Assembly (NCBI GenBank): GCA_037447605.1
Contig: CM074806.1
Location: 3,782,001-3,846,000 of the forward strand
Direction: 5' to 3'
Length of the DNA: 64,000 bases
DNA from: Zygnema circumcarinatum SAG 698-1b
Taxonomy: Eukaryota; Plantae; Zygnematophyceae
Shown: in pieces, positions 6,940 through 57,563 of the stretch
How the letters are laid out: every line of letters begins with the position of its first letter
How positions within the stretch are numbered: the first letter of the stretch is position 1
Notes under the pieces: model-generated
What the model was told of the DNA's origin: nothing
What the model saw: the letters and a program-made list of their open reading frames with translations, nothing else
The model's database searches: none
Translations under genes and position numbers: made by a program

Positions 6940-9009
6940 TCCTTAAGGTGCCAACAAGGACAAGGCGACCTTTCATGCTGCCAACACTCTCTCTGTGATC
7001 TCCTTCTCCACTTAGTTTAATGAGAAATGAAGAGGGGAAAAGCTGTCTGCCCAGCCAAAAGCTGTCTGTGCCAATCAAGGCCGAGGCTTCCTGAAATTGG
7101 CACCGCAGGTCCAGCCTCGTGGAATACCCCCGAAAATGAACTGTTTCAATCCTTTCATGCACTCATTTGAGGTGCACCGCTGAGTGGTTTTTACCATGCT
7201 GAAGCCTGTCTATAGTCTATTCTATTCACAGCTGCAGCATAATCTGCAGAGCCAAATAGTGGCTCCGGAAAATAAGGGGCGAATTAAGCGAGGATAATTG
7301 TCGGAATCGGAGGTAGCTATGGGGCCACTTAGCTGAAAGGCGGGGAGTGGTGGAATGTGGAGAGGAAGCGGGTGTAGCTGCTTGGCTTGAAGCCTCGAGC
7401 TGAGGGAGCCGGTCCTTGCAAGTGAGCTTGCGGCTTCGTATCATTCTTCCCAAGGTCAGAACCCTCATCCTACACAGATTTTCCCGGATCCAAAAGCGTC
7501 GGAAGGTCGTACAGTTATCCTTTTGATCGGTGTTGTGCTGCGTCTACTTAGGCTTTTCTGCTTTTGGATTCTTCAGTTTTCTCGTTACTCTAAACTGGCG
7601 ACCAAAGCCAGAAAACCATTCTTTGTGTCTTCAGTCAGGCGCTTACTCTTCATGTTCTGGGCGGATGCATTCCATATTGTGCAGGCGACTGCGACAAAAG
7701 CAGGACAACTCGAAAATGGTCATTCTGCATTCTCACTTGGAATTCATCAACTTCATAATGGATCAGCCATTATGACAAGTCTTTTTTTTTTTTTTTTTTG
7801 TTTTTCCTATTCCGAAAAAAATGGATGGTTTACAGTGATTGTAGTCTTCAGTTTTTGACGAGTCCTAAAGTGAAAACTGAATGTGGTATGCTTTTGGCGA
7901 AGGGTATCGCCTTTTTCCATGCTCCATCTTTGAGTGTTTCACGAGGCGGGTCGTACGTGCCCTTATGTAAAATAATTACACCTCACGTAAGAAACCTACT
8001 TGACGAGTGATAGATGTCGTATGGAGCTCCAACTGCGTCTTATAGTTCGAACACATAACTGCAGCGAGCAGTCACAAAGTCACGAGATTCAACCGACGGC
8101 AACAACGTTTTTTGTGCTGTGCTGATTACATGTCAGCATTTCAAAAAAAACCTGCCGACGTATGGTTTTCGAAGTTACACGAGCACTTCAAAAGTCGTGA
8201 TTAGTATAAGAATACGCGTTCCGTCCCGATTCCATAATTGACGCGTTACTTAAAGCGTAAGGTGGAAACATATTTTTTAAATGCTGCAAGCACGGTTCCA
8301 TCAGCGTGAAGATTTCTCCCTCCCCGTGGCTCTGTTTTCCAAGGCAGCGGAGAAACTCTGGTTCCATATCCTTCGCGCCATCTCAACTTCGTAGGAAACA
8401 GGCGACCCTTCTCTTTCCTCACTGACGGCTCGTCCCTCGAAACCAATATCAATTCTGGTCCCAATTTTTGTCTGCAATTATCCACATTGGAAAACTCGAT
8501 ATGGAATTTACGGTTCCCTTCAGTACGAGATCGAAAAATCATCACAAATTGTCATCAATGGAGACATCAATCCGCATGGTGCTGGCACAGACCGACTAGG
8601 CACGATCATAACAACGACAGAGATCACATTTTTCTCCATTATCGCTTATAGCGTGAAGGCAATTTACATTAAAGTATTGAGACCCGCGATAAGCTTTTGC
8701 GGTCGCGGGACCGCCTAGAGAAAGTGACTTCAGCGACTTAACATCGACGTGAGCGCGGGGCTTATATGTGCCCCACTTATTTTGAAAGAAAATGGGAAAA
8801 AAAAAATATTGAAAAGCTTGGGCACTTGGCTGCCCCAGAAAGCGCCTTGTGGCTGCTTCCTTTCGTCAATCGACCCACCTTCAAAAGCATCACCTTTACA
8901 AAGTATAGCGTATGTCTACTCCATGCATTGGAACATGCCTCCCTCATAAATTAATTATACTTCTCCTCCTCCCACCGCTCCCTCTCCCTCCCTCCCTCTC
9001 CCTCCCTCC

Positions 9010-9945
9010 CTACACCGGTGTCCGCACCCCCTTGAGCCGCGGCGTGTCGCCGAGCAGCCCCGCCATCCACGCCCACATGGAGGAGGGCCGCCCCTCGCCC
9101 GCCTTGGAGGAGGAGAAAGACTGCCGCCATGGCTCGGAAGCTTCGGAGCTTTCTTCGAGCTCCGCCGCCTCCTCCGCCAGCAGCAGCGCCTCCTCCTGCA
9201 GCCGCAGGGCCGCCAGGACCTGCTCCGCCTGCATCACTCCCCACGCCGCCTCCTTCACACGTGCGCGTGCAGCTTCCATCCTCAGCTCGTCACAGGCAAC
9301 CTCCGCATCTGCACATTCGACAATTAGAAACCAAAAGGTTAAGTGACAGTTGAGGAAATTTCAATATGCGGAAAAGAAATTTGCAAACTTACTAGCCTCC
9401 CCTCCCCCTCTCCCCACGCCCGAGAGAGAGCGGCACTCACCATGGCAGATCGCACGTGCGGGCAAGCTCATGGTCCTCGAAAGGCCCCTTCGGGGAAGCT
9501 GCACATCCGCGTATCCTGCGGAGGCGGTCCGCAGCAAGCAGCTCTGCCTTCCCCCATCCTCCCGCCATGGCTGGCACTCCTCCTTCTCTTCCTCCAACCT
9601 CCCTACTGCCTCCTCGCTCCTCCTCTCGTAGAACCTTTGCCAGCCATCCTCCTCTCCTTCGTCGTCCGAGCCGCTTCCCATCCCCCCATCATCCCCAAGC
9701 CTCCTGAGCATGTCCCAGTCCTCCACAAAGCCCACGGGATCCATCACCCTCCACTCCTCCTCCGACCATCCCTCTACGCCGAACCTCTCCTCGGTCACGT
9801 CGGCCATGTCCGCCTCCTGCCCCTCTGCCGAGCGCGCCTCCGGGAAGTCGAACACGTTGGTAGGAGAGGTGGGCGGGGAGAAGTGCCGGTAGCAGGCTCC
9901 GGCAGCCGCCTTGACCTCTGCGAGCTCTCCTCCGCGGCAGTCCAT
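9010..9945 (-). CDS. Unknown family protein, paralogue A (exons 9945-9441, 9308-9010; 267 aa)
   Basis: Phase-1 GTGAGT...GTGCAG intron joins two open exons with a total length divisible by 3. Contains SPTNVFDFPE, LSRTMSLP and ACDELRMEAARARVKEAAWGVMQAEQVLAAL, shared with the two neighbouring paralogues. Confidence 0.85.
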
Positions 9946-10699
9946 GGCGGCCCGTACTGCTACAGCTGCGCAGAGGCTCCGCTCAGTACAGCGCTTGGCT
10001 GGAAGTCCGCTTGGCCCTCAGGCTCCCCCTATATCTATGTATATATGTATGCTTGCATGTACGTACGGGATGTACGTATGTATGGTTCAGGCATGGGGGG
10101 AAGGGCAAGGATTCGGGGCAGGGGGGATGCACCGGGACCTGGGGTGCCAGGGGGGCGGGAGCCGCGTCAGGGACGGATTGAGCTGACGAGGATGGTGGGA
10201 TTGGACCAATGAGAGGCGCCATAAAGATAGGCTTTGGATTGCATCGGCAAGGGGAGGGGGGAGGTGGAGATTTGGAGGAGGATTTTCAGGGGATCTGGTT
10301 GGTCCATTAAATGAAGGAGGATCTAAAAGATTTGAAACGAATCTAATAATTTGGCGTATCCTGGGTTTGGTGGGGGACAGTGCCACATTTGGCGAATAGT
10401 GTGGCAGAGAAAGGTATGAACACGTCGGACAGATCTGATACTGCTCAATAATGTCGGTGCCAAACACTGTGAAAGGATCGCGGGACAACATGCCAGGGTG
10501 GCGACAATGCTGTACGGAGATATCATTGACTGCCATACGCAAATAACTTACTAAGATATCAGTACTAGTACAATTGCACGATTTTGAAGTTACATGAGCT
10601 AACAATAAATGTACTGAATTCAAAAACAAACCTTGCCAGCACAAATCGTCTGCAACTCTTTCAAGATCGAGAGGTCTAATTAACAATAACCGTCGAGAT

Positions 10700-11300
10700 A
10701 CACAGCACGCCAAGCGACGACAAAGCTAAGTATCCGCCTCGGAACGATCGCCGCTCCGCGAATCTTTTCCCGCTCCGCCATTGGCTGCACAGGCCAAGGA
10801 GGATGGGCCGTACACTTCGTACAGTTTCCGTCCGCCTTCTGATGACGGGAGCGGACGGACTCTGACCGAAACGGTTACGAGGAGAGCGCTGATTGGCGGA
10901 CGCGGTGCCACAGTCACTGTACGGACATGTTTCGTACAATAAGCTCAGACAGTGTACGGCCCATTGATCCGCGTGTTCGCTCTGACGTGCTTGTGACCGT
11001 ACAGATATTTGTCCGGAGGTGCCGTACAGAACAGCGCCGTGTCAAGATCTTGTCTCGTCCACAAACGAAAAATCCAAACGGGGGGAATCCGGGCGGCGCA
11101 GACCGCACAGAGGCTCACCCCCGTCCGTCGCTGTCCGTCACTGTCCGTCGGCGGCACCTGCTCACGAGTCACGACAGAAACGCCAAAATCTGCCGCCCGG
11201 CCGCAACTGGGCCGCCCTGAAGCCGACCAGTTCTAACCTGGCGGACACGTGACCGAACCTGATTGGCCCTGTGCCAAACTTTTGTCTGTTCGCACAGGCC
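10700..11300. promoter_or_regulatory. GC/CpG- and GTAC-rich bidirectional promoter island between paralogues A and B
   Basis: Lies between two divergent starts. Repeated CGTAC/GTACG, TGGGCC, CCAAT-like ATTGG and ACGTG motifs. Confidence 0.55.
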
Positions 11301-11664
11301 AAGACTCCATGTCAGCATGCCCCTTGCCTTTGCTGACGTGGTGAACTCCGACTCCTCCAATCAGAGCGCCGAACAACCCTCCAAATGTTCCCGTTCCAGA
11401 GAGCGTGATGACGTGGCAGCAGAGCGCCCCTGCCATGATGGCGCGCAGGTGGCGCCGTATCATTCGCCGCGCGCCCATTGGCCCGCGTCCCCCTTGCCGC
11501 CATGCCGCCGGCTTTAAAGAAAACCGCCTCTTCTCGGAGGGAGGGAGGGAGAGAGAGAGGGAGAGGGAGAGGAGGAGAGAGAGGGAGGTAGCAGAAGCGG
11601 AGGCAGGAATACAAACAGTTTCTAAGGAAACAAAGATTAAAATTTGGGATAAGGAAGGAGCAGA

Positions 11665-12639
11665 ATGAAGGGCGCGCGGGCAGCCATGGAGGGGGGAGGC
11701 GAGTGCGTGCTCGGGGGAGGGGACGGTGCAGAGATACTGGGGAGCAGCGCTTCCAGAGGGCTTCCGTGCTTGAAGACGCCGCGGAGTGAGAGGGAGGCCG
11801 AGGGGGGCGATGCGAACTCCCCCTCGACTCCCTTCGACTTCCCCGACGGCGGCGAGGAGGACCGCGGCGCGGAGAAGGGGAAGGGCGGGCGGTGCTCTGC
11901 GCCGGGGTCGCCTCTGAATGGGAGGCGGCAGGACATGGCGGGGGGGGGAGGAGGGGGGGGGAGGGCGAGGAGGGAGGGGAGGGGCGGGGAAGAGGACAGT
12001 GGGAGCTTTGGGGGCGACGAGCAGGCCTTCGCCGCAAGGCGGCTCGACCGCTCGGCGAGCCTGCCGATGCATCTCGTGTGGAAAGGTGAGGGAGGTCCTG
12101 CATTAGGCTAAGCTCGAATTATAGAAACGGCGGCATTTTATGATGCGGAGCACGCTAAAGCGCAGGCTACAGAGAACAATGCTGACTTGTTCAGACATGC
12201 TTGTGCTTCTCCAAGTCGATTATCTCCTTTTCGCTGTTTTTTTTTTTGTTGTTGTACGGTATTGGAGCAGGTCGACGTTGGTGCTGTTCCTAGATCTGAC
12301 CTTTGCCTTCTCGTTCTCACGGCAGATGCCGAGGCGGCCTGCGATGAGCTGACGATGGAGGCCGCGCGGATGCGCGTAAAGCACGCCGCGTGGCGCGTGA
12401 TGGAGGCGGAGCAGGCCGTGGCGGCGCTGACGGGCTCCTTCCGGCGGAGCCAAACCATGAGGACGGGCGGCGGCCGGCAGGGGGCGGACCCCCCTCGCCA
12501 GTCGCGATCGTTCCTTCCGGCTATACGGTCGTGGCGCACACTGTGGGCAGCCATAGCCGGACCACGAAGCAGCAGCAGCAGCAGCAGAAGCAGCAGCAAA
12601 ACGGGTTCAGATGAGGCAAAAGCGGCAAGGAGGGGATAA
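11665..12639 (+). CDS. Unknown family protein, paralogue B (exons 11665-12085, 12326-12639; 244 aa)
   Basis: Same phase-1 intron position as A and C. Contains SPSTPFDFPD, LDRSASLP and ACDELTMEAARMRVKHAAWRVMEAEQAVAAL. Confidence 0.85.
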
Positions 12640-14009
12640 GCTTTGTTCAGCGGAGGAGGACTTCATCCTCGGCGGCGGAGGATGAAGTCCTCCGCCGCTT
12701 CATTCGAGGTTAGCAATAATGAGACTTGCGATGGGATCCTGTTCAACACATCCGCTGAACAGAGCAGGTCACATCTGCACCTGCTTCTGTAGCAAGTGCG
12801 GGTCATTCGCTTATTCCAGGTGCTTACTTCGGGTTATGGAGGTCCGGAGCGAAGTTGACTGGCGACATCAAGATAAGGCTTGCAACCGTTGGTTGCACCG
12901 CGGCAGTTTATTTCATGGATTCAACATTTGAATCAGGAGCAGTGATCGTTTATTCCTTTAGATGGATGGGCGAGAAAAGGATCTTAAGACAAGGCACTTT
13001 TAGGATGGCAGCCCTCGATTCAAATGTTTGAAGTTCAGCGATACAACTCTCACTAGTCTTGTTACATCTGAATAGACGGCTCTCTGGCGGAAACCTGCCT
13101 AGGAACGCCTTTTTGTTTGGTGTTGCTTTGTGAAAGTAGTTTGACTACTACTGTAAATAAACTGATTGGTAATATTTAAGAACGTTGGTTTTGTTTTTCT
13201 TTCTTTGTTTTTCTTTTCTTATCCTTCGCTTCTGTCCCAGTGATGCTTTGCATTTGCTCACAGGCAACTGGAACAGCGATATTCGAAATGCAGGCGGAGT
13301 TTCGCCCTTGCACGCAGCAACCATTATTGACGGCAGGATGAAGAAACAGTCTGATGTGCATCCAAACATTCAAGCCTCTTCGGCATTCGAGATATTGGTT
13401 TACAACTACACGTCATTCAGCGTCACAAAACACTCCCATGCGCATGCGTGCGACATGACATGCCATGATATGACATGACATGACATCTGGGCACAAATGA
13501 CTTAAAAGCATGAGCGACAACAATGGAACTTTCAACAAAGCAAGACACCGAGTCAGAGAGAGAAGCCTTCCTTGGTTATTTCTCATTCCCTACAGCTCTA
13601 CTACCCATCGCTACCTGCTCAGTTTACACATACCCGCGCTGGAAATGGCCGCCATGACTCATGGCAGAACCGTCCGAGGTCCGACGCATCTAACAGCAGA
13701 CTTGTTCCCTTGCTACACCTACAGCGAGAAGAGAATTTCCTCGTAGACGGGGTTGAATTTACAAATGTAGAATAAAATTAATGAAAGTATGAATAGCACG
13801 AATGATTGAATGGGCTAATTTTCCTTCTCCTTACTCCAATCTCCCGTCAATGTACACACACGCACGCGCTTCCGACCATCTTCATCATCACTTATCTCAC
13901 CACTCCTCGTTCATGGCTCTCCACGAGCCTCCTCGACCGTGTAAAAACAAACCCCCCCTCCCCCCCCCCAACGATGGCGCCAATGATCAAAACTTCCCCC
14001 CTCCCTCCA

Positions 14010-14088
14010 TTCCCCCTCCCTCCATTCCCCCCTCCCTCCCTCCCTCCCCCCTCCCTCCCTCCCTCCCTCCCTCCCTTCCTCCCTCCCT
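14010..14088 (-). repeat. (GGGA)n-rich tract just 3' of the paralogue C stop codon
   Basis: The plus strand reads (CCCT)n. A shorter equivalent follows the paralogue A stop (8965-9010). Confidence 0.85.
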
Positions 14089-14110
14089 GAGGGCAGCAGC
14101 CGCGCTCCCT

Positions 14111-14973
14111 TCAGGCAATTGGCGTCTGCAGGTCGAGCCCCTCCCTCTCCTTCGCGGTCGCGTTCCAGAAGGATCGCAGGCACTTGGCGGCGTCCGAGAG
14201 CGTCCTCGCGGGCTTGCGCCGCGGCCCCCGCGGAGTGCCGCCCCCCGGCCCGCCCTCGGGGAGGAGGCGCCGCGGGGAGGACCGCTCCTCCTCCTGCAGC
14301 CGCATGGCGGCCACGACCTGCTCCGCCTCCATCACCTGCCACGCCGCGTGCTTCACCCGGATGCGCGCAGCCTCCACCTCGTCCTCGTCGCATGTCGCCC
14401 CAAAATCTGCACACCATGAATGCACACATTCGCGTCAGACAGAACTCGCCGCCATCTGCGTTACACAAGCAGCCATCGTTAAAAGCACGCAGAGGGGGGT
14501 GGACATTCTCTCTCACTACCTTCGTTTCCGAGAGACACGGGGAGGCTGGAGGAGCGGAGCAGGCTCGGCTCGTCCGCAATGATGAGAGGCGGCGGCGCAG
14601 ACCACGTCCGCGGAGAGCTCGGGCGGCGCTGCGGCCTGTCCGCCATGGCGAGGACCTCCAGCCGCCGCTCCGCGCCCTTGCCCGTGAACGAGTCCGCGAA
14701 CCCCATGGAGGCCGTGCGCGCGGGGCGCACCTCCTTCTCCTCGTCGGCTGCGGAGGCCTTTGCGCCCTTCAGCATCCACTCCTGCCACGCGGCCGCCTTC
14801 TCGTCGAGGGAGACCTCTGCGTGGCTGCTATTGCCATGGCTGCCATTGCTGCTGTCGGGGAAGTCGAACACAGTGCTCGGCGAGTTCTGCGGACTGCTCG
14901 TCGCGACCTCGACCTCGTCCTCATCCCACTTGGGCCGCTCCGCCGCAAAGTGGTCGAAGTCGATCAGTGCCAT
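14111..14973 (-). CDS. Unknown family protein, paralogue C (exons 14973-14520, 14406-14111; 249 aa)
   Basis: Same phase-1 intron position. Contains SPSTVFDFPD, LLRSSSLP and TCDEDEVEAARIRVKHAAWQVMEAEQVVAAM. Confidence 0.85.
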
Positions 14974-15169: not shown

Positions 15170-17130
15170 GAAACATTTAGGGCTGCCCGCCGGAACGGCG
15201 CCATACATGCGCGGGCGGAGGGGCGCCACGTGGCGAGCTGACCGGCTGGCAAGTAGCGGCGGACGGAAGACGACAGAAAACGAAAAAGGACGACGAGGGA
15301 CTGACAAGGAACGGTCCGTACATTGTGCCAGGCTGTCGAAAGGAATGGCGGCGGTAGATTTTTGTCGCAATGGGAAGAGGATCTGGGGAGGGAAGCGTGC
15401 GCGGCGGAATGGGACACGTGGCGGCACGAAGGGGGTGGAGCTAGATCCGAAGTACGAACTGATTCTGTAATTATATGGACAGTGTACGAACGGGCCTCGA
15501 TACGGAGAGTGAAAATCGGCGATTGGCGAGAGTACGTTTTGTCGCGGAGCGGGACAATTGTCCGCATCGTACGGTTCGCTCAGGGGGATTGTACGTCAGA
15601 AAACGACGGGCGGATGATTGCTGGAAATCAGCGGCGCGCGGATCTGAGAGAGAGCAGAAAACGGACACGCAGAAAAATGATGATGTAAAACGACAAGGCG
15701 GGGGATGGTTTTGGCCCATTAGGCCGACCGTATCGGAAACCAATGGGAGTACGCCACGTTGGACAACTTTGCCGCCCGCAGACCCGCAGGCAGTAAAGCT
15801 TGTTGGCATTTTCGAACCGTCCGGTCTTGCGCCAGCTCGCGCAGACGCGGCCACGTGCGCATGCCAGCTGTGTGCGAGCCGCGCGCGGTTACAGGCCGCG
15901 CGTGGGCGAGGGTCAACCGCGCGGCGCGCACTTGCAGGACACGTGGCGCACATAAAACGGAGCAGTGTGGTTGAAAGCGCACGTCGCGTGGTTTGGTTGC
16001 ACCGATCACAGCTGGAGGGTTTACGGCGCGCCACATGGCAGCGCGGGGAGGAGGCGCTCGTGGCGGACGCGTGGCGGCGCAATGATCGCGGCGCCACTCG
16101 CGCCTCGCGGTGAGTGCCGACATTTCACGCTGCGCCGACACCACCGACACGCTCTGCCGACATTTGCGCTGCCGACACCGTCCTCCACTTCTCGCGGAGC
16201 TCCCCGAGAGCCGCCGTCGAGCCGACACACTGTATCGTATCGTACCGTACCGTATCATACCGTACCGTATCGCGGCCATCTGCGCACCTGGGAATGCACC
16301 GCTCTGTCCGTCCGTCGAGCGCGGATGGTCCCCCCGGAGGAGGGGCGGGCCGGCGCGAGTCTCGCGACCCATTGGATGACACAGTTGGCCGGCAATGCTT
16401 GGCAATTTCTTCCATGCCAAGATGCAAATAGATATTGGAATGGTTGGCAACCATTAGTGTATGCTGCCAGTAACTACGCCAGGTTACGACCACTGGCAGT
16501 TGTTGATTCGATCGACGCTAGTGGCTTGGTTGCCAACCATAGAATCCAGTTGCAACCATTGGCAATTGTTTGCAACCATTGCATTCAACCAGTTGCATTG
16601 GTCGATTGACGCGCGAACCAATGTCCCCACCCATCCCATGGTCCCCCGCTTCCAGTTCGCCTCAAAAACCTTTGGACCCGTCGGCCGGCGAACAATCCCC
16701 CGTGCCCAATAATGGCGCGCCTCCACCCTCGCTCTTGTCGCCACCTGTTCCGCGCCGACGCGGAGCGTCAGCACCGGTACGCCGACCAATCAGGAGCCAC
16801 CGGCCATTTTTGTCGTTTTATATATGAGTAACCGTATTCGTCATATCGCCAGCATAGCGGATGCGACCGACACGACCGACGCGCCGTTTACTGCCGACCG
16901 GTGGGATTGCCGGGCACTGCGGTATCGAGGCAGCGGCCGGCAAACTCTGTCGGAAATGTCCGATACACAGGCGATGTGACGATATTTTCGATATGCAAAC
17001 CGTCAGCAGTCAAGCCCTGAACGTACGGATCGTCCGTTTCCTTGCGTACGGGGATAATCGGTGGTTCCTGATTGGTTGTCGTATCCTTGCTTACGTCATG
17101 ATGTTAAGGTCCTCTCCGTCGTGATGTCAC
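15170..17130. promoter_or_regulatory. Extended regulatory island upstream of paralogue C with ABRE (ACGTGGC), DRE (RCCGAC) and GTAC clusters
   Basis: ACGTGGC at 15228, 15416 and 15941; six RCCGAC within 16116-16226; CGTAC runs at 16242-16270; minus-strand TATATAAA at 16824-16817. Confidence 0.55.
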
Positions 17131-18645: not shown

Positions 18646-21600
18646 TTATGATGATCGATTGGGTTGCCACGATGTCATGGCGAGCAGAGGCTTGTCGTCC
18701 CATGTGAGAATAAGGCAGCCTTCTTCTTTCAACAGTCCATAGCTCGACCTATACCTGCACAAAATGCACAGGAAAAAGACGAGGATGAGAGATCCCTCCG
18801 AGACGCTTTCCCAGTCATTGCTTGAAGGTTCAGGAAAGCGACTCTTGCATTCTACTTCCAAACGCCACGAACAGCAGAGCAGTGGAAATAGATCGACCAT
18901 TGCTAATAGATTCTGGTCCTCGGTATTGTCTACAGGCTTCATTTGGCCATGGTCAATTCTAAAGACAAACAGATGAGAAAATGCCACTGTCAAGGTGGGC
19001 GAGAGGGAGAACCGGAAACGCGAAGTGAAAGCTGCCTACTCACGTTTGTAAAAGGGCCTTGACTGTTATGACCATGCCTTCACTGACAGGTCGAGGATTG
19101 AACCCAACGGTTCGCATCAGCTCCTGCCATCGGCCCGCCAACTCCTGTCTTTTTCCACAGCCCTTTCCTCCTTCAGCGACCACATTTACGATGGCCCGCC
19201 CAAGAACTTGTTGCTCAAATAAACGTCGCGCTGCCAGGTCTCTAGGAATAGCTTCCTCAATAGACTCAAAAAGTGAGGAATAGTAGTACAATGCTTCATA
19301 AAATCGAGCCAGAAAGAAGGGTGAGTTGTGGTTTGTGTGCTGTTCTACAATAGTGCACACTTTTGGATTCAAAGATCGAAAAGTACGAAGCACATGCTCG
19401 CATGAGCTTGCTGACAAGCGAAAGTTGTCCAAAAGCTGATGAAGACGGAGTGAGAAGTTGACAGCTATGGCCTCTCCATTCCTCATGTCCAAAATGTTGG
19501 CCGCCAAGTCCTCCAGGCGACAAAACACCGGATGATATTCGAAAGGCACGCCCCACAACTTCGCAACCCTCTGCAAACAAACAACCCGACGGTAAATCAG
19601 CATGCAGACATGCTCCGCCACATACACTTCCTCTGCAACATGCCTTCATTAAAGAGGTCCATCATATGTGATTTTGACGATCCTCTGCTTTTTGAATCAA
19701 AGAGAATGTTAGAGGTAAGATTACCTTCAATTTTTCACCGACGTTCAGAAGACAATAAGGAGAATTTCCTTCCCCCTGTTGGAACTCAATGGCTGTCAGA
19801 CGGACAACAGGTGGTCCTCCTGGCCGAGCTGCTAGAGCTTGGATAAGGGCAGGCCATTGAAGACCAAACCCAGTCCCACAATCCATGATGTGAACGCTGT
19901 TCTCCCCTTTAAAGGCTTCCAAGATTGCGCTGTTCGCTGCTACTTGACCAAATGTCAGGTAAGGGCTTGCATTCATCACAACCTGCACAAGTCCGGACAG
20001 ACAGCATCAAATAGAGTGTCAAAAATACTGGCGAAATCAGACTCGTTAAAGTTCCAGGGACGACTAGTGACGAGCAGCAATCTTGGCTGAAACAACCGCA
20101 AAACGACAAACGACAAGATGAGGCACTTCGCCTGTGTACCTTATAGAAAACACCACCAATTTCCAGTTCTCAATTAAGTAATAGTTCTGCTCAAAATAAA
20201 AGCCGACTAAAAGCTGTCTAGGAACTTCCACATAAAATCCACCCCGTACATGCAGGTAATTTAGTGAAAGACTATCGTGTTTCAATGTGGAAAGTATCTC
20301 TGCAACCATCATACCTACATGCCGTTACAAATGTGAAAGAAATGCTAACTGACTCACCTGGAAAGACTCCAAGATATGCCTCGCTCTTTGACTACAGGAC
20401 TTGCCATTTTCGCCAGCGTTTATAGAGGAGCTCGTGTCTTCGACCACAGTCCCAACTTCCGAACAACTGGGCTTACACGGTTTTTGACACTCGTCAACTA
20501 TTTTGTCGCCCGACATTCTTGCATTGAGACCTTGTAAGAAGTATGCTGATAGCCTCTGCTGAGCATCACCATAGACGGATGCGACTTCAGTTAGCTTAGC
20601 GAGCAAGTCAACTACTCTTGACTGATCGTCTGATACAATTGCCTTGGCAACTTCGATGAGAAGTTCCATAGCTGGAAGTGTGCTCTCTTGATGAACATTA
20701 GCCCTCTGTCCCTGATCACTAGGGCTGAAATGCCCATTGGGTGGTCTGCTTGATGCAGTCGTGACAAGCGTTGCCTTTTTCTTGTTGCATTCATTCAATA
20801 TCTTACCTAGAGGTTCTTGAGCATGCAGCACTTCTAAGCTCAAACCGGGATGTTTAGATACGTCTGCAAGGATCTCACTCGACATTAATTCTCCTCGAGT
20901 ACTAGCTTCTTCAGCCACATGCTCATTAGTAAAATAGTCCGCAAGCAAGTCATACGCTTCTTCCGCCTCCAAACCTCCAACACTTGCACTCTGGAATTCA
21001 GCAGCGTCTTCCGCAGGCGTCACTCCGTCCTTGGTCACAGCGGCTGCTGCAGTCAAATCTTCTGCACTATCAAGGAACTGCTGCATCTCCAAAAATGCAT
21101 CCTCTAAACCATCCAACCCTCTAAAAAAGTCTTCCTCCATGACTGCGCTTGCCCCATGACTATCCACTTCCTGAAATATGTCGCCAGCCAATCCAGTACC
21201 CTGTGATCCTTTTTTCGCTTCTGGCCGATCGGAAGCAGTTCTAGACGCTGTATAATCAGTACCATTCATTGGCCCTTGTCTTACGGATTCGACCAATGGA
21301 ACGGCAGATGATGCAGCTGTGGCACTTGACAGCTCGGGAAGATGGTCGTACGCTCGCATGTGTGTCGAATTTGATCGAGTCCTCATCCATAGATTTTGTA
21401 AAGTGTTTGTCAGGTTTCGTGAATTCCCAACATCGTCTTTCCCAGACCTAACTCTCTTTAAGCCCTTGCTTTGAGTCTCTGCAGAGCACAATTCGAAAAG
21501 TAAGACCTCATGTGCACCAGTCAGATTCTTCAACAATGAAATATTCGCGAACCTGGGGTGCTTTTCTAGGGATGGACCAAGCATTAAACAAACAAATTTT

Positions 21601-22267
21601 TGCGTGAAAACTTTGTCATCAGAGGGCATCAAAATATCTCCTCATACACATACGCATGTCCAGCGTGAAGTACTTTCAGCATGACATAGATACATTTGTC
21701 AATTCAAGTTTGCAGCAGCACACGCAGCATAGAAGGATCATGAGGCGAAAGAGCTAGAAGTAATTGCACATGAAAGTGTACATTCAGAACATCGCCACCT
21801 CTGAAACAGCTGCTGGCAAATCACTTAAGAAGTGTTCAGACTGATCTACTCCAGATAAAACATTTTTGCCCGAAATAAGTCAGCCACCATTACGGAATAG
21901 TCTACCAACTTTAAAATCACACCAGGATGCCAAATCCTTCCAGAACATTAAACAGTAGAGAAACTAGGAGATCATTAAGTAAAATCGTCAGGTAAAACCT
22001 GAACGGGAGATAAAAAACCGCACCTCCCATCTGCTTGCTGCTCTTGCCGTTGGTGCTGGCAACAGGAACTGCCTCTTCCAAGACACGTTCTGAACGAGAG
22101 CCTCCATGGCTGCCACCGCTGGCCGGTTGCTTGCTCTGCAACCATGCCTTCTGCAACCTCGACTCCAAATCCTTTGGAAGAGTCTCCCTGTCAGTGACCA
22201 CCTTTGCAGGGATGAGAGGGCCGTTGTTGATCCTGCCGAACTCGCGACGAGCGAATCCTGCAGTCAT
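18646..22267 (-). CDS. GRAS-domain transcriptional regulator, copy 1 (exons 22267-22024, 21478-20358, 19982-19725, 19570-19044, 18754-18646; start codon uncertain)
   Basis: [14 protein letters not shown]...[15 protein letters not shown]; VHIID region [20 protein letters not shown]...VHIMD...[18 protein letters not shown]; [34 protein letters not shown]; [23 protein letters not shown]. All four subdomains are in order. Confidence 0.95.
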
Positions 22268-23499
22268 GGCGCCCTCTTTCACTTCCTCCTGCTGTCCTTG
22301 CAGCCGCCTTTTATGCTCAAATGCTTTAGGAAGATGCCATGGCGGCCATGGACAGGTCAGCTCCAAGAGCAGAACTTGAAGCTTTCATCGTTGCAGGCAA
22401 ACAAACGACCATGCCTGCACAGTTGAAAGACGCGCACAGTACCTCTAATTGGGACGCCACGGTACCCTCTAGAAGGACGACGCGCTCCAAGTTATTCAAA
22501 ATTGGGCGAATCCGCGCGGCCGGCCGGTTTCCGTGAGCAGCGTACAGTTTCAAAATCCGCGTTATCCGAAAATAGCGGGACTGTGATGCTGAATTTCCAC
22601 AGCGAACCAGGCCACTTTCCCATCGCCCACTTTCATCTCGGCGGGTCCTGTCCTGCCTCCCCATTCAAAGATCTGGCGAATCTAGACTACCAATGAAAAG
22701 CCGTCGCGTGTCCGCTGACGTGGACACTGCCATGCTGGGCGCGCAGCGGTGCATGCGATGGCGCGCCGCAGAGTGGGTTTGCGGGCCATGCTTAAGCCAT
22801 GGTGGCCGGGCCATGGCCGCCGCCTCCTGCTGCCTGGCTGCCTACTTCTGCTCTGCCTCCCCTTGCATCGGGGCCTCGCCCGTGCTGAGGGCTTTCAGCG
22901 AATCCCTGATCCTGCATCCGTGGGAATCATTAGGGCTATGCAGGACAGTTTAGGGCGAATTTGCTGCTTTCAAGGAACGCCTGCCCCCCCCCCCCCCCCA
23001 CTGCTGCAAGAGAACCTAGAAGCCTCCCTCTCTCTCTTACTCTCCTTCCCTTTCCCTCTCCTTTTAATTAGCCCCTCTCCCTCTCTCTCTCGGTTTCGCG
23101 CTACCTCTTTCTCGCTTGTTGAAACCACCCCTATCTTCTTTTTTCTCCATTTAATGCAGGCCCTCCCCCTCCCTCGGCTTCATGCTCTCCCTCTCACGAT
23201 TCCCTGCTCTCTTTCTCAGTTCCATGAGATATCTCTCTCCCCATCCTCTCTCTCTATTGTTGAGATTCAAGAATTAGGCTTCAGGGACTTAGTGGGGGAA
23301 GTACAGCTTTTAAGCATTCGGGTTTAGTGTTTGAGAGTGGGATGTGGCATTGATCCCACGATGGCGATAATGCCATCAGATGTGCATGGACAAAGTCAGC
23401 ATGGGAACCACGAAGGACTGGCTGCAAAGGACCCAAGCACAAAAGAAAAAGCTAGGAGCTGGAAGCTACGCCTAGGGTCAACCTGAAGGGGGGGGGGGC

Positions 23500-23990
23500 T
23501 TGCACGAATTAGGGCTCCGAGATTACGGCAGGGCTCGGCTCGGCGCGCATTCGCAAGTTCGTACAACATACGGCCGCGCCTCCGGAGGGCCGGGACCGGG
23601 AGGGCCCGCGCTCGCCGTACATCCAGCAGTACTGTACTACAGTACAGTACAGTATACGGTACGAAAAATCTTGCTGTACTGTATGTACTGTACAGTATCA
23701 CCTGATACTGTTCGTACGTATCACGTGGCCCTGCCGCCCATCCACGTGCCACTCTTACTCGCGCGCTCCAATCAGAACTTTGCCGTATGACGCTCGCAGA
23801 CAAGGGCAGGGCCGGACCTTCCGTATCAAAAAGTACAGTACGGTCATTATATTTCTCAGATTTTTTCAAACTGGACATAGAACGTCAGTGGCCAGTCGCC
23901 TGCGACGGGAACGGTCGCATGTGTCCTCCCTCCCTGCCCGCCGGCCGTCCTGTTTCGCAAGCACGCACGCAAGCACGCAAGCAAGCAGGT
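23500..23990. promoter_or_regulatory. GTAC-saturated core of the bidirectional GRAS promoter
   Basis: About 13 GTAC tetramers counted by eye in ~290 bp (23560-23845), plus ACGTGGC at 23723. Confidence 0.6.
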
Positions 23991-24459
23991 ATTTTCCGCG
24001 GCCCTCTCCCGGGGGGTGGGACAGGTAGGGCAGAGTCCCCCGCGTTGTCCTGGAAGGCCTCCTTCCCTCCCTGTCCCCCCTTCTCCCTCCATCTCCACTC
24101 TGGCCACTCCTCCCCTCCTCCTGCCTCCCTCCCTACCTACCTCCCTCCCTACCTACCTCCCTCCCTCCCCGCTCGCTCTGCTCCTTCCAGCAGCATCTGT
24201 AAGGTTCTCGAGGCGGAGGAGTCGTAAAGCTTCCTGCGAGGCCATCCGTGCGTACGTGTGTCCCTGCTGCAATGTGGCAGAGAGAGCCACCGCTTTCCGA
24301 GGGGGATGGAGTGGCTGGGTGCGGATTGCTGGTCGAGGGGACGGGGGCCTAAGGGAAGTGTGCAGTTAGCAGGCTTTGATCGCAGCAGTGCGAGTCTCGC
24401 TTAGCAGATCGGGTTCCGTGCTGTCTTAGGGTTTCCCATAGTTTTTGTAGGGTTTGGAG

Positions 24460-27400
24460 ATGACGGGCTCAATGTGGAGGAAGGATTCTCGGACGGAGCA
24501 TGGGAAGGCTGCCGTGGTGGAGCCTGCGAGAGCAGTTGCAGACAGGCAGGGCGTTCCTAAGGACTTGGAGGCGCGCCTGCACTTGGCATGGCTGCGCTCG
24601 CAGCTCAATGCTGTCATCTCCAAAGCAGACATTTCAGGTAATGCGGGCACGTCAATGCTCTGTCTCTGCTTATTGAACTGACCTCGAGGTGAAGACTAGA
24701 TATGTCAGTTATTTTTTCCTTATTTTTGCATATGCACTGACGTTGATTCTTCCAGGTTGCGTCTGGAAAGGCATTTTTTTGAGGCCTGGCGATTTCTGGT
24801 GTTCGTTGATATTCACCCGTGAATTGTACTAAAAGGGAATGCCTTTGCTTGAGATGTTGTGGGATCATTTGCCAATATTTCTCTCGCATTGAGTGTTGGA
24901 TTTTTTGCGATGACGTGGGCTTTTTTGCGTGTGGAAATTTTGAAATACAGCACTTTAACATATTGTTCACAGTATGACTATTCTGCAAGCAGGAACATGC
25001 TGTTGGGTTCATTATTTGAATCCACACAATCCTTTAACGCAGTGTGATTCTGACTTACGGACACTAGAGGCTAGCAGCCACTGTACACATGTATGAAACT
25101 CATGTATCAGTATCGATCACTTAGTAAGCGCCACTTCTTGTTGTACTTGCTGTTCCAGAAGCGGTTTTTCCACAAAGAATTTGACGTGTTTGCGCCTTAA
25201 TTTTTTTTCTCTAGGTGGAGGAAACATTAGCCGGAACCGAGCAAGCAAAGCAGCTGAACAGGAGGCGAGTCGATGTAGTGACCCAGTTCAGCCGGGGCCA
25301 ATTAATGAGTCGTTCTCCATCCTTGCAGCTCAGCAAGTTCCTGCTTCCAGTGCTCCCACCCTCCATTCCACCAATAATGCCGATGTGAATCACTCCCTTG
25401 AGGCCCCTTCGAGAGGTTTATCGGTGGAAGAGCGGGTTCGATCAGACTTAAACCCTCGGATCCATGACCTCTGGAATGCAGTGGGATCTGGGTCACCTAT
25501 ATCCAGGGGCAGCAATGATTCAGCCGAGCAGTCGTATACTTTGCATGCTGACTCACATCACGATTCGCTCGTGGTAAACCTCATTTATAAGGAAGCAAAC
25601 ATGAACTTTGATTTGACGGAGGAGGACCTGTTTAAGGGTTTGGAAGATTTGAGTGGTGCCTTTGGGGAGCTGGAAGAGCTGCTTCCAGATGGGCCTGGAG
25701 GCTTTGTCTCCCCTGCTCTTGCAGCTCACGATAAAAAGGACATTCCTCCTGAGAACAATGTGCAGAACAACGTGACTTTGGAGCAAAGGACTTTCCTACA
25801 GGAACTCGTTGATGAGCAGGGTGATGTTTTGGAGGCAGGCAGGAAATGGAATGGGATTTCTGCTCCTCCTGCTAGAGACCTTGATAAAGTACCCTCTCTC
25901 CCAGCAGTGAGGAACAACAGGCATCCAAGGCTTCTCCCTGAAGGGGCTGCAAGTCAGCAACAAAGAGGCTCGTTGAAAAGGTCTCTCTACAAGCAGACAG
26001 AGGAGTCTTCAACAGCAGATAGCTCGAGTGTAGAACGTCGGGCTGTTCCGCGAACTAATGGGGCTCAAGCGGGAGCTCAGGCAGCAGCCATGGCGGGAGC
26101 TTCTGCAGCTGCTACAGTTAAGGCTCAAGGAGTAAATCCCATTGAATTGTTGGTAGCTGTGGCCCAAGCCATCGTGAAGAGGGATCAGACTGCTGCCCAC
26201 AAGCTGCTGGGACAGCTTTTCAATGTGGCGTCTATCTACGGAGATGCATCGCAGAGGCTCTCTGCGTACTTTCTTGAGGGGCTCACAGCGAGAATTTCGG
26301 GTGAGATGCCAAGGGATCATATGGCGCTTATCCAGCCTGTGGATTACAAGGTGCCCAATTGCACACACAACATCATGGAGGCGTTCCAAGTGCGTTTCTG
26401 AACTCCCTGCGAGCTTTTGCACATGTTAAGCTTGTGAAAGGACTAGCGAAGATTAGGATGTAGCATCGTAACTTGAGGTTTTGTCATATTCTGGCTTACC
26501 TTGCCAACAAGGCGGCACAGGAAGGAAACTAACCCTAAAGATCCCTTCCAAAGGTCTTACATAAATCATTCTTTCGCGTGGGAGTGTTTTCTGCAGTCTT
26601 TAATGGCATCCACACCGTACCTCACCTTCGGCCAGGTGACCGTGAACTGCGCAATTTTGGAGTCCTTTGTGGGAGTTGAGAAGGTCCATATTGTTGACTT
26701 TGGAATCGGCCATGGCCTCCAGTGGCCTCCTCTCTTCCAGGCCCTCTCTGCTCGGCCGGGAGGTCCCCCTCTTGTGAGGATGACTGCAATCGACCTTCCC
26801 TCCCATGGCACCCGGCGAGCTTACTGCATTGAGGAGACGGGCGAGCGGCTGAAGGTGAGTCGGCAGACGCTCCTCAAAACTTGGAAAATCTGAAAGTGTC
26901 TGAAAAAATAAAGTATATGGCAGTTATTACATCCAACAAAGGATTATTAACACCTGATATGAAGATTTTTTAAAAGGTTAAAAGGTTAAAAGGTTCATAG
27001 ATCTTGTAAGAACTTAGCGCAGCCAGTTTCTGGACAGGATTAAATAGACCGGGTCCTGCAACTAAAAGACCAAGAGAAGAAAAATTGGAGGACAGGTTGC
27101 CGTTGCTCCCTGGAAAGAATGTGAATTCAATATAGTTTGACGGTAAATTTACTCTTTTATAGTATGTTTTCACATAAGAATGTCACCATCTTCGGAGATC
27201 TTCTTGAAATGGATTTTGTTTCAGTGCCCGAGTCTCACTTAACTGGACAGAAGAAAATTATGTGGGAACGTAATACCCCTCCATCACCATCACGGTTGGA
27301 ACATGTCCTCCGAATGAATGGGACCTAAGACAGTTATATTTTCTGGTCATCTTATGACCGTGAATCATTCAAAAGAACTCGTTGCATATATCAGTTGATT

Positions 27401-28310: not shown

Positions 28311-30279
28311 AAGCGGCGAGCAGTCATGGCCCATCCCACCTAAGTGGGCCCATGCCCGTTGTCGGAAGGATCGAGCATTGAATCACATAGATTTTGGTAA
28401 CTTAGTCTTCACACCCTCCCTGTATGCGATGTGAAGGTGCCTTTGATCCTTCTTTTTCTCTGCCGGCAACGTTTTTATCGCAGGGGAAAGTACGAGAGAA
28501 AGCCCTAAAGAGGCCTTGCTGCAGTTGCACTGTTCTTAAAGAAAGTGACACTTTTCAACTTCTGATGGTTCTTATGGTGTTTGTTGTTGTGAAGGGCATT
28601 ATCAACAGCCCCATCGGGCGAAGGCTGAGCTGCGCGTCCTTCATAGAGTCTGAGTTTCGCCAGCTTTGCTGTGTCGCTACCCCAACTGTGCTTGTGCCGT
28701 GCGCAGAGCCGTGGGATTAGGCTCGCCCTTGATGCCCTCTGCACGTGACAACTGTCCAGTCCCTCGTGTCCAGTCCGTTTGTAAATTGTCGCCGCACTTT
28801 AAAAGGAACTCTCAACTGTGTCATCATCCAACTGCACTGAACTGTGCTGCGACTTCGACTCCAGGAGTTCAGCGAACACATCTGAAGTAGCCCGCCCTTG
28901 CAAGTGCAATGCAGCTGGTAAGGATTTAGTTTTACTGTTGGGGACTTGTAGAAAGCTTCTTGGCTTTGTTTTTGTAATTGCTAGAGATGCCTCAGCGGTT
29001 AGCCTGTGCGCAGGAACCACCTTTTTTGGAAAAGAGAGTACAAGATTGTGGGGGTTACGCGCCTTCTGCAGCTGGGTCGTGTGTAGCGGATGTAGGCCGT
29101 AGGATTGACGACCAAAAAACTAAAAATGATAAATGAAAATGGTCCTAAATGATCCTATTTGTATTATGGAAGAATGAAAATGTATTTGCCTGATGACGGT
29201 GTGCTGGTTGTTTCTAGAATTCTAAGAGTTTGTGTTTGTATATGATCCTAGTGTTGTTCTTTAGTCATAGTCACTAGTCTTTGGACCTCACATAAAAAAT
29301 ACCTCACACTATCTCCCATTCTCTCTGGAAATTTAACCTCTTTAATGCGCCTCATTGCGTGGCGCTAGTCCCATCAGGCAGGCGGTTGGCTGCACACGGT
29401 TCAAGTTCAGCACTTGGAAAAACTTCGTCGTGGAGATCGACCCCCCTTCCTCCCCCCCCCCTCGGTCTGCACCTCCAAAGGCTCAAGTTTTCGACCCGCG
29501 GAGGCGCAAACCGAGTGGGCGAGTTTTTTGGCGAAAACCTGCGAGCGAAGTTTTCCAACTTGCTCCAACCGGTTGAACTTCAACCGTCAGCGTGCGCAAG
29601 CTGGCTGGATGGAACTTGGAAGGAGGAGGGGCGCCGCAATTCTCGCGACTAGCACCAACCAGAACGCGCCACGTGGACTCCACGTGGCACCAATCAAACA
29701 GCGAATGGGGAGGTAGGCTGCAAAATGTTTGGAGTGCCCGAGGACTTGACGCGGTCTGACGTGCCACGTGTTGGCGTCTCGTAGTTGACGTTTCGTTAGT
29801 TTACCCCATTTTTCTATTCGGGTGTGAAGGAGAGACCGAATTTCGAGAGGCTCATTTAACCTCCCCCGCCTCCAGCAGTGCAACTTTTCGCACGTGCTAA
29901 ATGACATAAAAAAAGTTGACCCGGTCAGCAAAAGTTGAAGAAGGACGATCCCTGAGGACTAGTGGAATAGAGGGCCAAAGTTCAAGGAACTCGAATCACG
30001 AGTGGACTCCAGCCCTCGGTCAGAGGGGCCAAGGCCAGCCAAGACTTCGAGATTCTAATGTCCGATCATGTGAGATTCTGCAGTTCAATATCTGCCGGCC
30101 GCATCTCTTTGAGATTTCACCGTTCACAATAAGCGCTGGATACGCGCAGCAGTATCGAATTTCACCACCGTCATTGATTCGATCTTTACTTGCACGGGAG
30201 ATCTTACGCCTTAAATATTCAGATTTTACCTGACGTGGCATTCCTCTTTTGCGATACGAGGTGAATCTTGAAAGATCTT

Positions 30280-31060
30280 TTCGTATCAACCAATCGTTTG
30301 TCTGTTAGTGCCAATCTCCAGCTGATCGCCGCCATGCCACGTGGGCTCGGCCAATATACGAGCGCCGCCTGCCCAAAAGATGTTGTCGGCGAAGTTTGTC
30401 ACGGCCTGTTCGCAAACAAGACCTTTTCTCCGAGCAGCGACCACCGTGCCACGTGTCTACACGACGGGCGGCGTGACCACGTCATCCCTGTGCTGGCGCC
30501 CCCGCTCCCAATCCCGCGGCGCACCATCCGGCGCCGGTCAACGGACGGTCCCGATCGCCCGCTCTTGAATGACGCCCGCCCGGCCACCCGACGGAGGCCG
30601 AATCGACGGCTGCGATCGACTCTTCTGTCTCCGTCTCGCCGATCCGGGCGCGCGGATCCTTCGTACGGCACAACTCCCGACAAAACGACCGTACGTATGT
30701 CTGCCGCGGATACTTGCCGCCCGCCCTCCTACTCCTGGCAGGCCCGGGCGGCACTTTGTCCCTTTTCAACCGCTTCGTACAGATTCCTTCTTTCGCCAGC
30801 CCACCGTCCGTACGGCTGGCCCTCCCGCGCGACTGCCAGCTCCGCCCGCTTGCGTCCGTACATATGTTCGTACGTTTACCGTACGGCCTCCCGCGCCCGT
30901 ATTCCGGGGGGCCCCTTGGCGCGGTCCAATCATCCGTACGATGCTGCGCGCCGCGCCGGCCGGTGCCGGCCAGTCGCTTTTCCGCCGGCCGGCGACAGCG
31001 ACCGGCGGGTCCGCCCTCTTATTTCTTGGGTCCGCCACCGGCGGCCGGCAATTTTTTTTT
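30280..31060. promoter_or_regulatory. CpG/GTAC-rich promoter island upstream of the single-pass RLK
   Basis: Multiple CCGTACG/TCGTAC and CACGTG motifs, same composition as the other islands. Confidence 0.45.
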
Positions 31061-56589: not shown

Positions 56590-57430
56590 CGGCGGCCGCC
56601 GCCCCTTTACGGCGCGCGGCGGCGGCCCGACCTCTCGTCGTTCCGTCGCCGGCGCTTCTCGAGGGCGGCCGAGTCGGGACACTTTTGTCGGCGCGCTGAC
56701 ATGGCGACCGCTCACTGGCTGCCGGCTCGCCGCTCGGACGGACGGTCACGGTCGGCTGTCCGTCCGTCCGTCCGTCCGTCCATCCGTCGGTCGGTCGGTC
56801 GGACGTCGGTCGGATGTCGGACTGATGACCTTGGCGCGCAGTGAGACTGTGACACGACGTGACGTGACTCACTCAATACGGTTCGGTCGGGCTGTCGGTC
56901 CGCTCTCATCGCTCTTTTGTCGTTTCTGTCCCCCGCCGCCAACGGTTGGATTTTGCAGGGCTGACGCGGCACACGGAGGGGTACAGCTCGCCGTCGATTA
57001 CACTTGTGATGTATCGCAGCCGTCGTTTTCCTAGCAGGAAAAGGCTTATCCAGCGCCCATGCTATCTGCGCCGTCGGTCGCACTTGCAGAAGCCAAGGCC
57101 GTCCGATTGATGGCGTCACATAGGACACGACACGTGGCGCTCCTGTCAGTCATAGGCGGGTCCACGAGCGCTCATTGGAAGACGCTGTTGTGATGGATCC
57201 GCATCCGTCAAAAAAATCGCCACGTGTTATTAAACAGCTGTTTTGCCCGGTCGAATGCCACGTGTCACCTTGAGGGTTTTGCTCTTGCCTTCGCCACGTG
57301 TCATCACAGGAAAATTCTGAAGAAATCCTAACCCCACCCTCCACCCTCCACCCTCCACCCTCCACCTGGACATCCTCGAGCTCCAAAACCCTCGAACCTT
57401 TTCAGCCTTAAACCCTAAACCCTAGTACGG
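56590..57430. promoter_or_regulatory. Bidirectional promoter island between ABCG and RimP-like genes, ending in tandem telo-boxes (AAACCCTA at 57410 and 57417)
   Basis: (CCGT)n/(CGGT)n runs at 56759-56810, CACGTG motifs, and AAACCCTAAACCCTA about 140 bp upstream of the RimP start. Telo-boxes are known in promoters of plant translation-machinery genes. Confidence 0.5.
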
Positions 57431-57563
57431 TAGCCCTTTGAACTCCCAAAAACTGTGCAGAACCTAAGAAAGACTTCCAGTCACTGTTTTACGGGCACAT
57501 GCAGAACTGGCCCTATTCTACCTTGCGCAGTTTCGGTTACAGTTGCAGTTGAACTGCCCGCGC

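Follow-up and report, generated by a model that had tools for sequence, protein, structure and literature searches.

Three divergent paralogous genes of the alga Zygnema circumcarinatum SAG 698-1b encode a protein family that has not been described before and, to date, is confined to one lineage. They lie side by side at positions 9010-14973 (5964 nt) of a 64,000-nt stretch of contig CM074806.1 (positions 3,782,001 to 3,846,000), which is called the window below and to which all coordinates refer. The three, named A, B and C, represent the tandem triplication of a protein-coding gene that is real, spliced and expressed. Their products share a module in which a candidate phosphorylation site precedes a long predicted helix, and the same module was found in one protein outside the window.

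The initial annotation, made from the letters of the DNA, had described three genes of 244-267 aa in the order -,+,- that share the position of one phase-1 intron. Gene models rebuilt from the sequence agree with this description and give 267 aa for A (-), 244 aa for B (+) and 249 aa for C (-). Each gene has a single intron, bounded by GT and AG and inserted at the same position in phase 1, so that an Asp codon is split in all three. An in-frame stop precedes each of the three initiator ATGs, and the 5' untranslated regions (UTRs) of A and B are free of upstream ATGs as far as the RNA contigs extend. A tblastn search of the whole window with the three proteins returned these three loci only and no fourth copy. 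The elements of the three genes are as follows.

9441-9945, minus strand: gene A exon 1, aa 1-168 plus 1 nt, with SPTNVFDFPE at 9838-9867, RTASAGYAD, and LSRTMSLP at 9460-9483; RNA contigs 9441-10053
9309-9440, minus strand: gene A intron, 132 nt, GT..AG, phase 1; joint 9308/9441 present in RNA
9010-9308, minus strand: gene A exon 2 with its stop codon; the helix core occupies 9196-9294, and MWAWMAGLL lies near the C-terminus
11665-12085, plus strand: gene B exon 1, with SPSTPFDFPD at 11818-11847 and LDRSASLP at 12043-12066; RNA contig 11588-11889
12086-12325, plus strand: gene B intron, 240 nt, GT..AG, phase 1; joint present in RNA
12326-12639, plus strand: gene B exon 2 with its stop codon; the helix core occupies 12340-12438, and the Trp segment is WRTLWAAIA; RNA contig 12324-13183
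14520-14973, minus strand: gene C exon 1, with SPSTVFDFPD at 14854-14883, RTASMGFAD, and LLRSSSLP at 14539-14562
14407-14519, minus strand: gene C intron, 113 nt, GT..AG, phase 1; joint 14406/14520 present in RNA
14111-14406, minus strand: gene C exon 2 with its stop codon; the helix core occupies 14294-14392, and the Trp segment is LRSFWNATA

Direct evidence for these models comes from RNA contigs of this alga, taken from four public runs (X1 to X4) and compared with the 5964 nt of the cluster. All three predicted exon joints are found exactly in these contigs. The joint of gene A (9308/9441) is present in X1, at a depth of 847, and in X2 and X3. That of gene B (12085/12326, reported as 12083/12324 with the cut shifted by +2) occurs at low depth in X2, X3 and X4. 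The joint of gene C (14406/14520) was recovered in four runs out of four, with a depth of 1397 in X1. Transcripts of A and C are therefore abundant in at least one library, X1, and those of B are weak. A lack of spliced transcripts had been named beforehand as the observation that would count against the initial annotation, and the exact joints of the four runs show the opposite.

The same contigs show further features of the transcripts. The 3' UTR of gene B extends to about 13183, as seen in the contig 12324-13183. Contigs at 13486-13969 have a depth close to that of gene C (1505 in X1) and probably represent a long 3' UTR of this gene. Contigs of X1, X3 and X4, three runs out of four, depart from the window sequence at 13454/13486 with identical loose ends, and RNA depth falls to zero at 13189-13387. 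The break at 13454/13486 could be a 3'-UTR intron, or an assembly or strain difference at a CATGACATG-type repeat. In X4, contigs that retain the intron of gene A (9384-9440) accompany the spliced form, and the retained intron holds an in-frame stop at 9361-9363. One X1 contig carries a 2-nt deletion at 12237, in the poly-T tract of the gene B intron, which is probably a strain or length polymorphism. Between the divergent genes A and B, the interval 10172-11528 is covered by RNA contigs of X2-X4 at a depth of 12-17 and is nearly silent in X1. No convincing open reading frame (ORF) was seen in this interval; its RNA coverage might reflect a non-coding transcript, an alternative and long 5' UTR of B, or carry-over of DNA.

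The three proteins are held together by a small number of motifs in a constant order. The first block, SPxxxFDFP(D/E), reads SPTNVFDFPE in A, SPSTPFDFPD in B and SPSTVFDFPD in C. The second, LxR(S/T)xSLP, reads LSRTMSLP, LDRSASLP and LLRSSSLP respectively and ends 6 residues before the exon junction in each protein. Exon 1 is otherwise divergent, SPxxxFDFP and L-x-R-x-x-S-L-P being its only invariant blocks. At the start of exon 2, an acidic cap and an invariant Cys-Asp lead into the conserved core. The stretch of about 33 residues written CDE...EAARxRVKxAAWxVMxAEQxxAA(L/M) begins, in each of the three proteins, 5 residues past the junction. Two additional motifs, RTASxG(Y/F)AD and AAxRLQEE, are confined to A and C, and further RxxS sites occur in these two proteins, one of them within RTASxG[YF]AD. 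All of the motifs that the initial annotation had listed, including the tryptophan segments near the C-termini and the pair limited to A and C, are present at the relative positions that it gave. In tblastn comparisons between paralogues the core scores E values of 1e-11 to 4e-14; the sequence similarity of the three genes is well beyond chance.

At the DNA level, the copies resemble one another only over 105-130 nt of the core (~78-80%) and in GA-rich low-complexity sequence. This restriction to the coding core and low complexity indicates old duplicates and not recent copies or mobile elements. GGGA/GA-rich tracts directly follow the stops of A and C (8975-9009 and 14050-14100) and lie just upstream of B (~11540-11590); they are the sole non-coding likeness among the three loci. 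On the 35 codons of the core, Nei-Gojobori ratios of non-synonymous to synonymous divergence (dN/dS) range from 0.17 to 0.51, with a proportion of synonymous differences (pS) of 0.41-0.55. The GC content at third codon positions (GC3) is 0.81-0.90, which compresses dS and makes these ratios upper-leaning estimates. The purifying selection proposed by the initial annotation thus stands with moderate support where the core is concerned.

Outside the core, the proteins have the character of flexible chains. A, B and C are hydrophilic, with grand average of hydropathy (GRAVY) values of -0.67 to -0.80, and Ala, Glu, Gly, Arg and Ser are abundant in them. By isoelectric point, A (4.5) and C (5.1) are acidic and B (9.5) is basic. 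No signal peptide or hydrophobic span was noticed in the three sequences when they were read by eye. AlphaFold2 models exon 2 of gene A as a continuous helix from residue 2 to residue 56, with predicted local distance difference test (pLDDT) values above 90, beyond which confidence is low until a weak short helix appears at the Trp segment. For exon 1 of gene C, the mean pLDDT is 55 and the predicted template modelling score (pTM) is 0.18, with one weak helix. These models fit the earlier description of a disordered protein with one helical module, and the three proteins are predicted to be mostly disordered apart from the core helix.

The invariant residues of this helix, taken over the three paralogues and the outside relative introduced below, lie on every side of the helical wheel. 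An Ala stripe forms one face; another carries invariant Glu, Trp and Gln, along with positions where a basic (Lys/Arg) or a hydrophobic (Met/Val) character is conserved. Conservation all round argues for a bundle or a sandwiched interface. It suggests a helix that is buried or sandwiched, in a bundle, an oligomer or the groove of a partner, rather than a one-sided amphipathic helix at a membrane surface.

The family could not be attached to any described one, as the initial annotation had anticipated. All searches were run with exon pieces, which are less sensitive queries because RxxSLP and the helix sit in different exons. None of the six exon translations matched a Pfam family at E<=10 in hmmscan, in a collection that includes Dehydrin, the LEA groups, CP12, Remorin_C and domains of unknown function (DUFs). 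A profile search of PDB sequences likewise returned no match at E<=10. The long, confident helix model was compared with the AFDB clusters by Foldseek and gave no fold match below E=1 (best E 1.3, probability <=0.28), a null that is expected since a lone helix is an uninformative query. A search of the ESM Atlas with exon 2 of gene C produced a best score of 0.71 and no lead. Degenerate core patterns had 599 matches in metagenome contigs, none of which was confirmed by tblastn. Resemblances to CP12 'AAWD.VEEL', Remorin_C and the DDX6-binding FDF motif were considered and rejected, as there is no Pfam match at E<=10 and the context differs.

A profile of the three exon-2 translations was also run against all 1.84 billion representative proteins and gave three matches. 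One of them, P0002, is the only true homologue found: a predicted protein of 532 aa from a EukProt Trinity transcriptome. It aligns from RATSLP, via an 11-aa linker and DAEAACDDD, through the helix with 43-53% identity, and its blastp E values are 1.5e-15 against A, 2.5e-11 against B and 3.4e-12 against C. P0002 has a C-terminal Trp segment like the three paralogues; unlike them, it is twice as long and has a Ser-rich N-terminal extension. It has no Pfam match at E<=10 either. The two other proteins, P0001 and P0003, were rejected as homologues: they align over 11 and 9 stretches of a WD40-like repeat and of another repeat, because of the low-complexity tail of the profile. Word-index homology searches with exon 1 of gene A, the C-terminal region of P0002 and the alignment of the four sequences yielded nothing beyond P0002, among proteins of 0.55-1.75 times the query length; relatives of other lengths can escape such a search. 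The proteins of the window are themselves absent from the large collections, which points to thin sampling of streptophyte algae there. No land-plant homologue was found at E<=1e-3 with the short exon-2 profile. The existence of P0002 implies that the family predates the local triplication and is very sparsely sampled.

Comparison of the four sequences defines the family by a single module: RxxSLP, some 10 linker residues, the acidic cap DAExACD[ED] and the long helix MEAARxR[VI][KR]xAAWx[VI][MV]xAxQ, all of which are kept in P0002. The family is new in its sequence; the type of protein, in which a disordered chain bears short linear motifs and a single interaction helix, is a familiar one.

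The motifs themselves offer a possible function. The 14-3-3 mode-1 consensus is RxxpSxP, and Yaffe et al. are said to have given it in 1997 as RSxpSxP. The corresponding pattern R-x-x-S/T-x-P is found in all four proteins, as RTMSLP in A, RSASLP in B, RSSSLP in C and RATSLP in P0002, and the serine lies about 15 residues upstream of the helix. In A, B and C the site can be written L(-5)xR(-3)xxS(0)L(+1)P(+2), which matches the pattern of SnRK2, SnRK1 and CDPK kinases. For the SnRK2 kinase OST1, experiments have established [LIVMF]-5 x [RK]-3 xx[S/T][LFIM]+1 as the optimum, and a precedent exists in ABF3, on which OST1 creates a 14-3-3 site (PMC2978106). L-x-R-x-x-S-L-P would thus combine a kinase optimum with a mode-1 motif, as in the 14-3-3 clients of SnRK/CDPK kinases (T451 of ABF3, phosphorylated by OST1; the hinge site of nitrate reductase). 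The likeness is one of motif class only, the ABFs and nitrate reductase having no sequence relation to A, B and C. Once phosphorylated, RxxSLP would be bound by a 14-3-3 dimer at a distance of some 15 residues from the helix, and a 14-3-3 protein in this position would gate the interaction of the helix, either with a partner or in its own oligomer.

A second input may enter through the N-terminal block. In A, B and C, S-P-x-x-x-F-D-F-P conforms to the DEF pattern (FxFP downstream of S/T-P), which P0002 lacks. The S-P would be a proline-directed acceptor and FDFP a candidate DEF (FxFP) docking motif for mitogen-activated protein kinases (MAPKs). Since S-P and FDFP occur together in all three paralogues, their sequences make a MAPK input likely in Zygnema circumcarinatum. 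A full-text literature search for 'FDFP' retrieved only a candidate DEF motif in human ATR, an example of FDFP read as FxFP. A close analogue is found in BASL, a disordered protein whose FxFP (DEF) motif is required for function and is linked to MPK3/6 (PMC5014157; bioRxiv 10.1101/2021.08.05.455184). Like A, B and C, BASL and BSLL of land plants are largely disordered proteins of about 250 aa with few conserved short motifs, among them an S/T-P beside FxFP. Their published architecture differs in some points. Their FxFP reads FAFP[I/V]L, belongs to the D3 domain at the C-terminus and precedes CC(R/K)F, whereas the FDFP of A, B and C is N-terminal and has no CC(R/K)F tail; RxxSLP and the helix module are not described for BASL/BSLL.

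The region upstream of gene C adds an indication about expression.

15225-15947, no strand assigned: G-box/ABRE-like cluster (CCACGTGTC, CACGTGGC), within 1 kb upstream of gene C

This cluster contains four CACGTG palindromes with flanks of the type of abscisic-acid-responsive elements (ABREs), at 15227, 15415, 15852 and 15940, and ACGTGGC at 15753. The pattern ACGTG[GT]C reaches 8 strand-counts there, against 0.30 expected from 2000 simulations under a dinucleotide model. Judged by these elements, the promoter hints at control of gene C by bZIP or bHLH factors, typical of stress- or light-responsive genes. Together with the high transcript abundance, the cluster upstream of C would point to stress- or light-responsive expression. 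Elsewhere, the same pattern accumulates at 57001-58000 (7 strand-counts per kb) and 30001-31000 (4), for a window mean of 0.59.

Taken together, A, B and C are possibly phospho-regulated signalling substrates or adaptors, a reading to which we would tentatively give somewhat less than an even chance. The motif assignments (kinase, 14-3-3 and MAPK docking) and the one outside member of the family go beyond the initial annotation. Several points weigh against this reading. Short motifs were matched by pattern only, and matches of this kind are often non-functional; with F at +5, the spacing from S-P to FxFP just reaches, or falls short of, the lower limit of the canonical 6-20 residues. P0002 has no clear FDFP, at best a degenerate SPST...YFDKP, and it carries Arg in place of Leu at position -5 of the RxxSLP site. 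The family is defined by four sequences only, which makes the conservation statistics thin, and the RNA contig depths come from four runs of unspecified growth conditions. Finally, the core helix could have a purely structural or protective role. A more specific version of the phospho-regulated reading is a rather long shot. The family would then consist of stress-induced, ABRE-driven disordered adaptors, a hitherto unrecognised point at which SnRK2-type signalling, MAPK signalling and 14-3-3 proteins converge in the algal lineage that is sister to land plants; the helix would bind a core partner only when RxxSLP is unphosphorylated or free of 14-3-3, and a land-plant counterpart would be absent or diverged beyond recognition.

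A protective role is the substance of a first alternative, which we consider unlikely: A, B and C would be stress-protective hydrophilins resembling late embryogenesis abundant (LEA) proteins, disordered chains in which the helix would fold upon drying or in the cold and would then shield membranes or proteins, with phospho-motifs that are secondary, as in the S-segment of dehydrins. The likeness to dehydrins and LEA hydrophilins covers several features. The three proteins share with them a hydrophilic composition (the GRAVY values given above, with abundant Ala, Glu, Gly and Arg), predicted disorder with a single helix-forming segment, an N-terminal motif that contains FDF, candidate phospho-serines and, upstream of C, an ABRE-rich promoter; the contig depths of A and C in X1 (847 and 1397) are very high as well. 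The N-terminal FDF is loosely reminiscent of the dehydrin F-segment, an idea that was rejected on the absence of a Pfam match at E<=10 and the different context. However, neither Dehydrin nor any LEA family of Pfam matches at this threshold, and A, B and C contain no repeated 11-mers, no other repeats and no Lys-rich K-segments. Their helix differs in composition, being Ala/Trp-rich and conserved on all faces, and is not a Lys-flanked amphipathic membrane helix. The precisely kept kinase-type motifs are more typical of signalling proteins, and B is basic and weakly expressed.

The second alternative is a helix-mediated oligomeric scaffold or coiled coil, in which the kinase, 14-3-3 and MAPK matches are coincidental and the motifs bind other partners. 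It is likewise improbable, at about one chance in a handful. The helix of some 55 residues in A, its Ala pairs near heptad spacing (A-A x6 A-A x5 A) and its all-round conservation are compatible with such a scaffold, as are the high false-positive rates of short-motif matches and the absence of FDFP from P0002. On the other hand, RxxSLP is invariant in four sequences out of four, in a module of 43-53% identity, and its distance from the helix is constant. All four specificity positions of the SnRK2 optimum are matched by the site in A, B and C, and the retention of such a motif without use would be hard to explain.

A third possibility is suggested by the neighbourhood. A putative pair of GRAS genes is situated at about 19.9-26.7 kb of the window, where long ORFs occupy 20325-21632 (-) and 25181-26401 (+) within ~19863-26716. 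A, B and C could be nuclear co-regulators that act with these genes as a co-regulated module, and part of A, acidic and rich in Trp, looks similar to an activation domain. This proposal is very doubtful: the GRAS genes are separated from the cluster by at least 5 kb (5-12 kb away) with other sequence between, A, B and C have no conserved nuclear localisation signal, and adjacency alone is weak evidence in eukaryotes.

The last explanation, that the loci are chance ORFs in a GC-rich region with many overlapping long ORFs on both strands, or that they derive from a transposon as the initial annotation had itself considered, is refuted and has next to no probability left, given the exact spliced joints and high depth in the RNA runs, the conserved intron phase and position, the homologue in the transcriptome of another organism, the lack of Pfam domains, of further copies in the window and of repeat structure outside the coding core, and a resemblance among copies confined to that core.

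Disordered orphan families are common in every algal genome, so that the present finding is solid and will not surprise a specialist. Streptophyte algae close to land plants serve, however, to reconstruct the origin of plant stress and developmental signalling. An abundant, lineage-restricted family with a defined module is, in this context, a tractable candidate for a lineage-specific branch of signalling.

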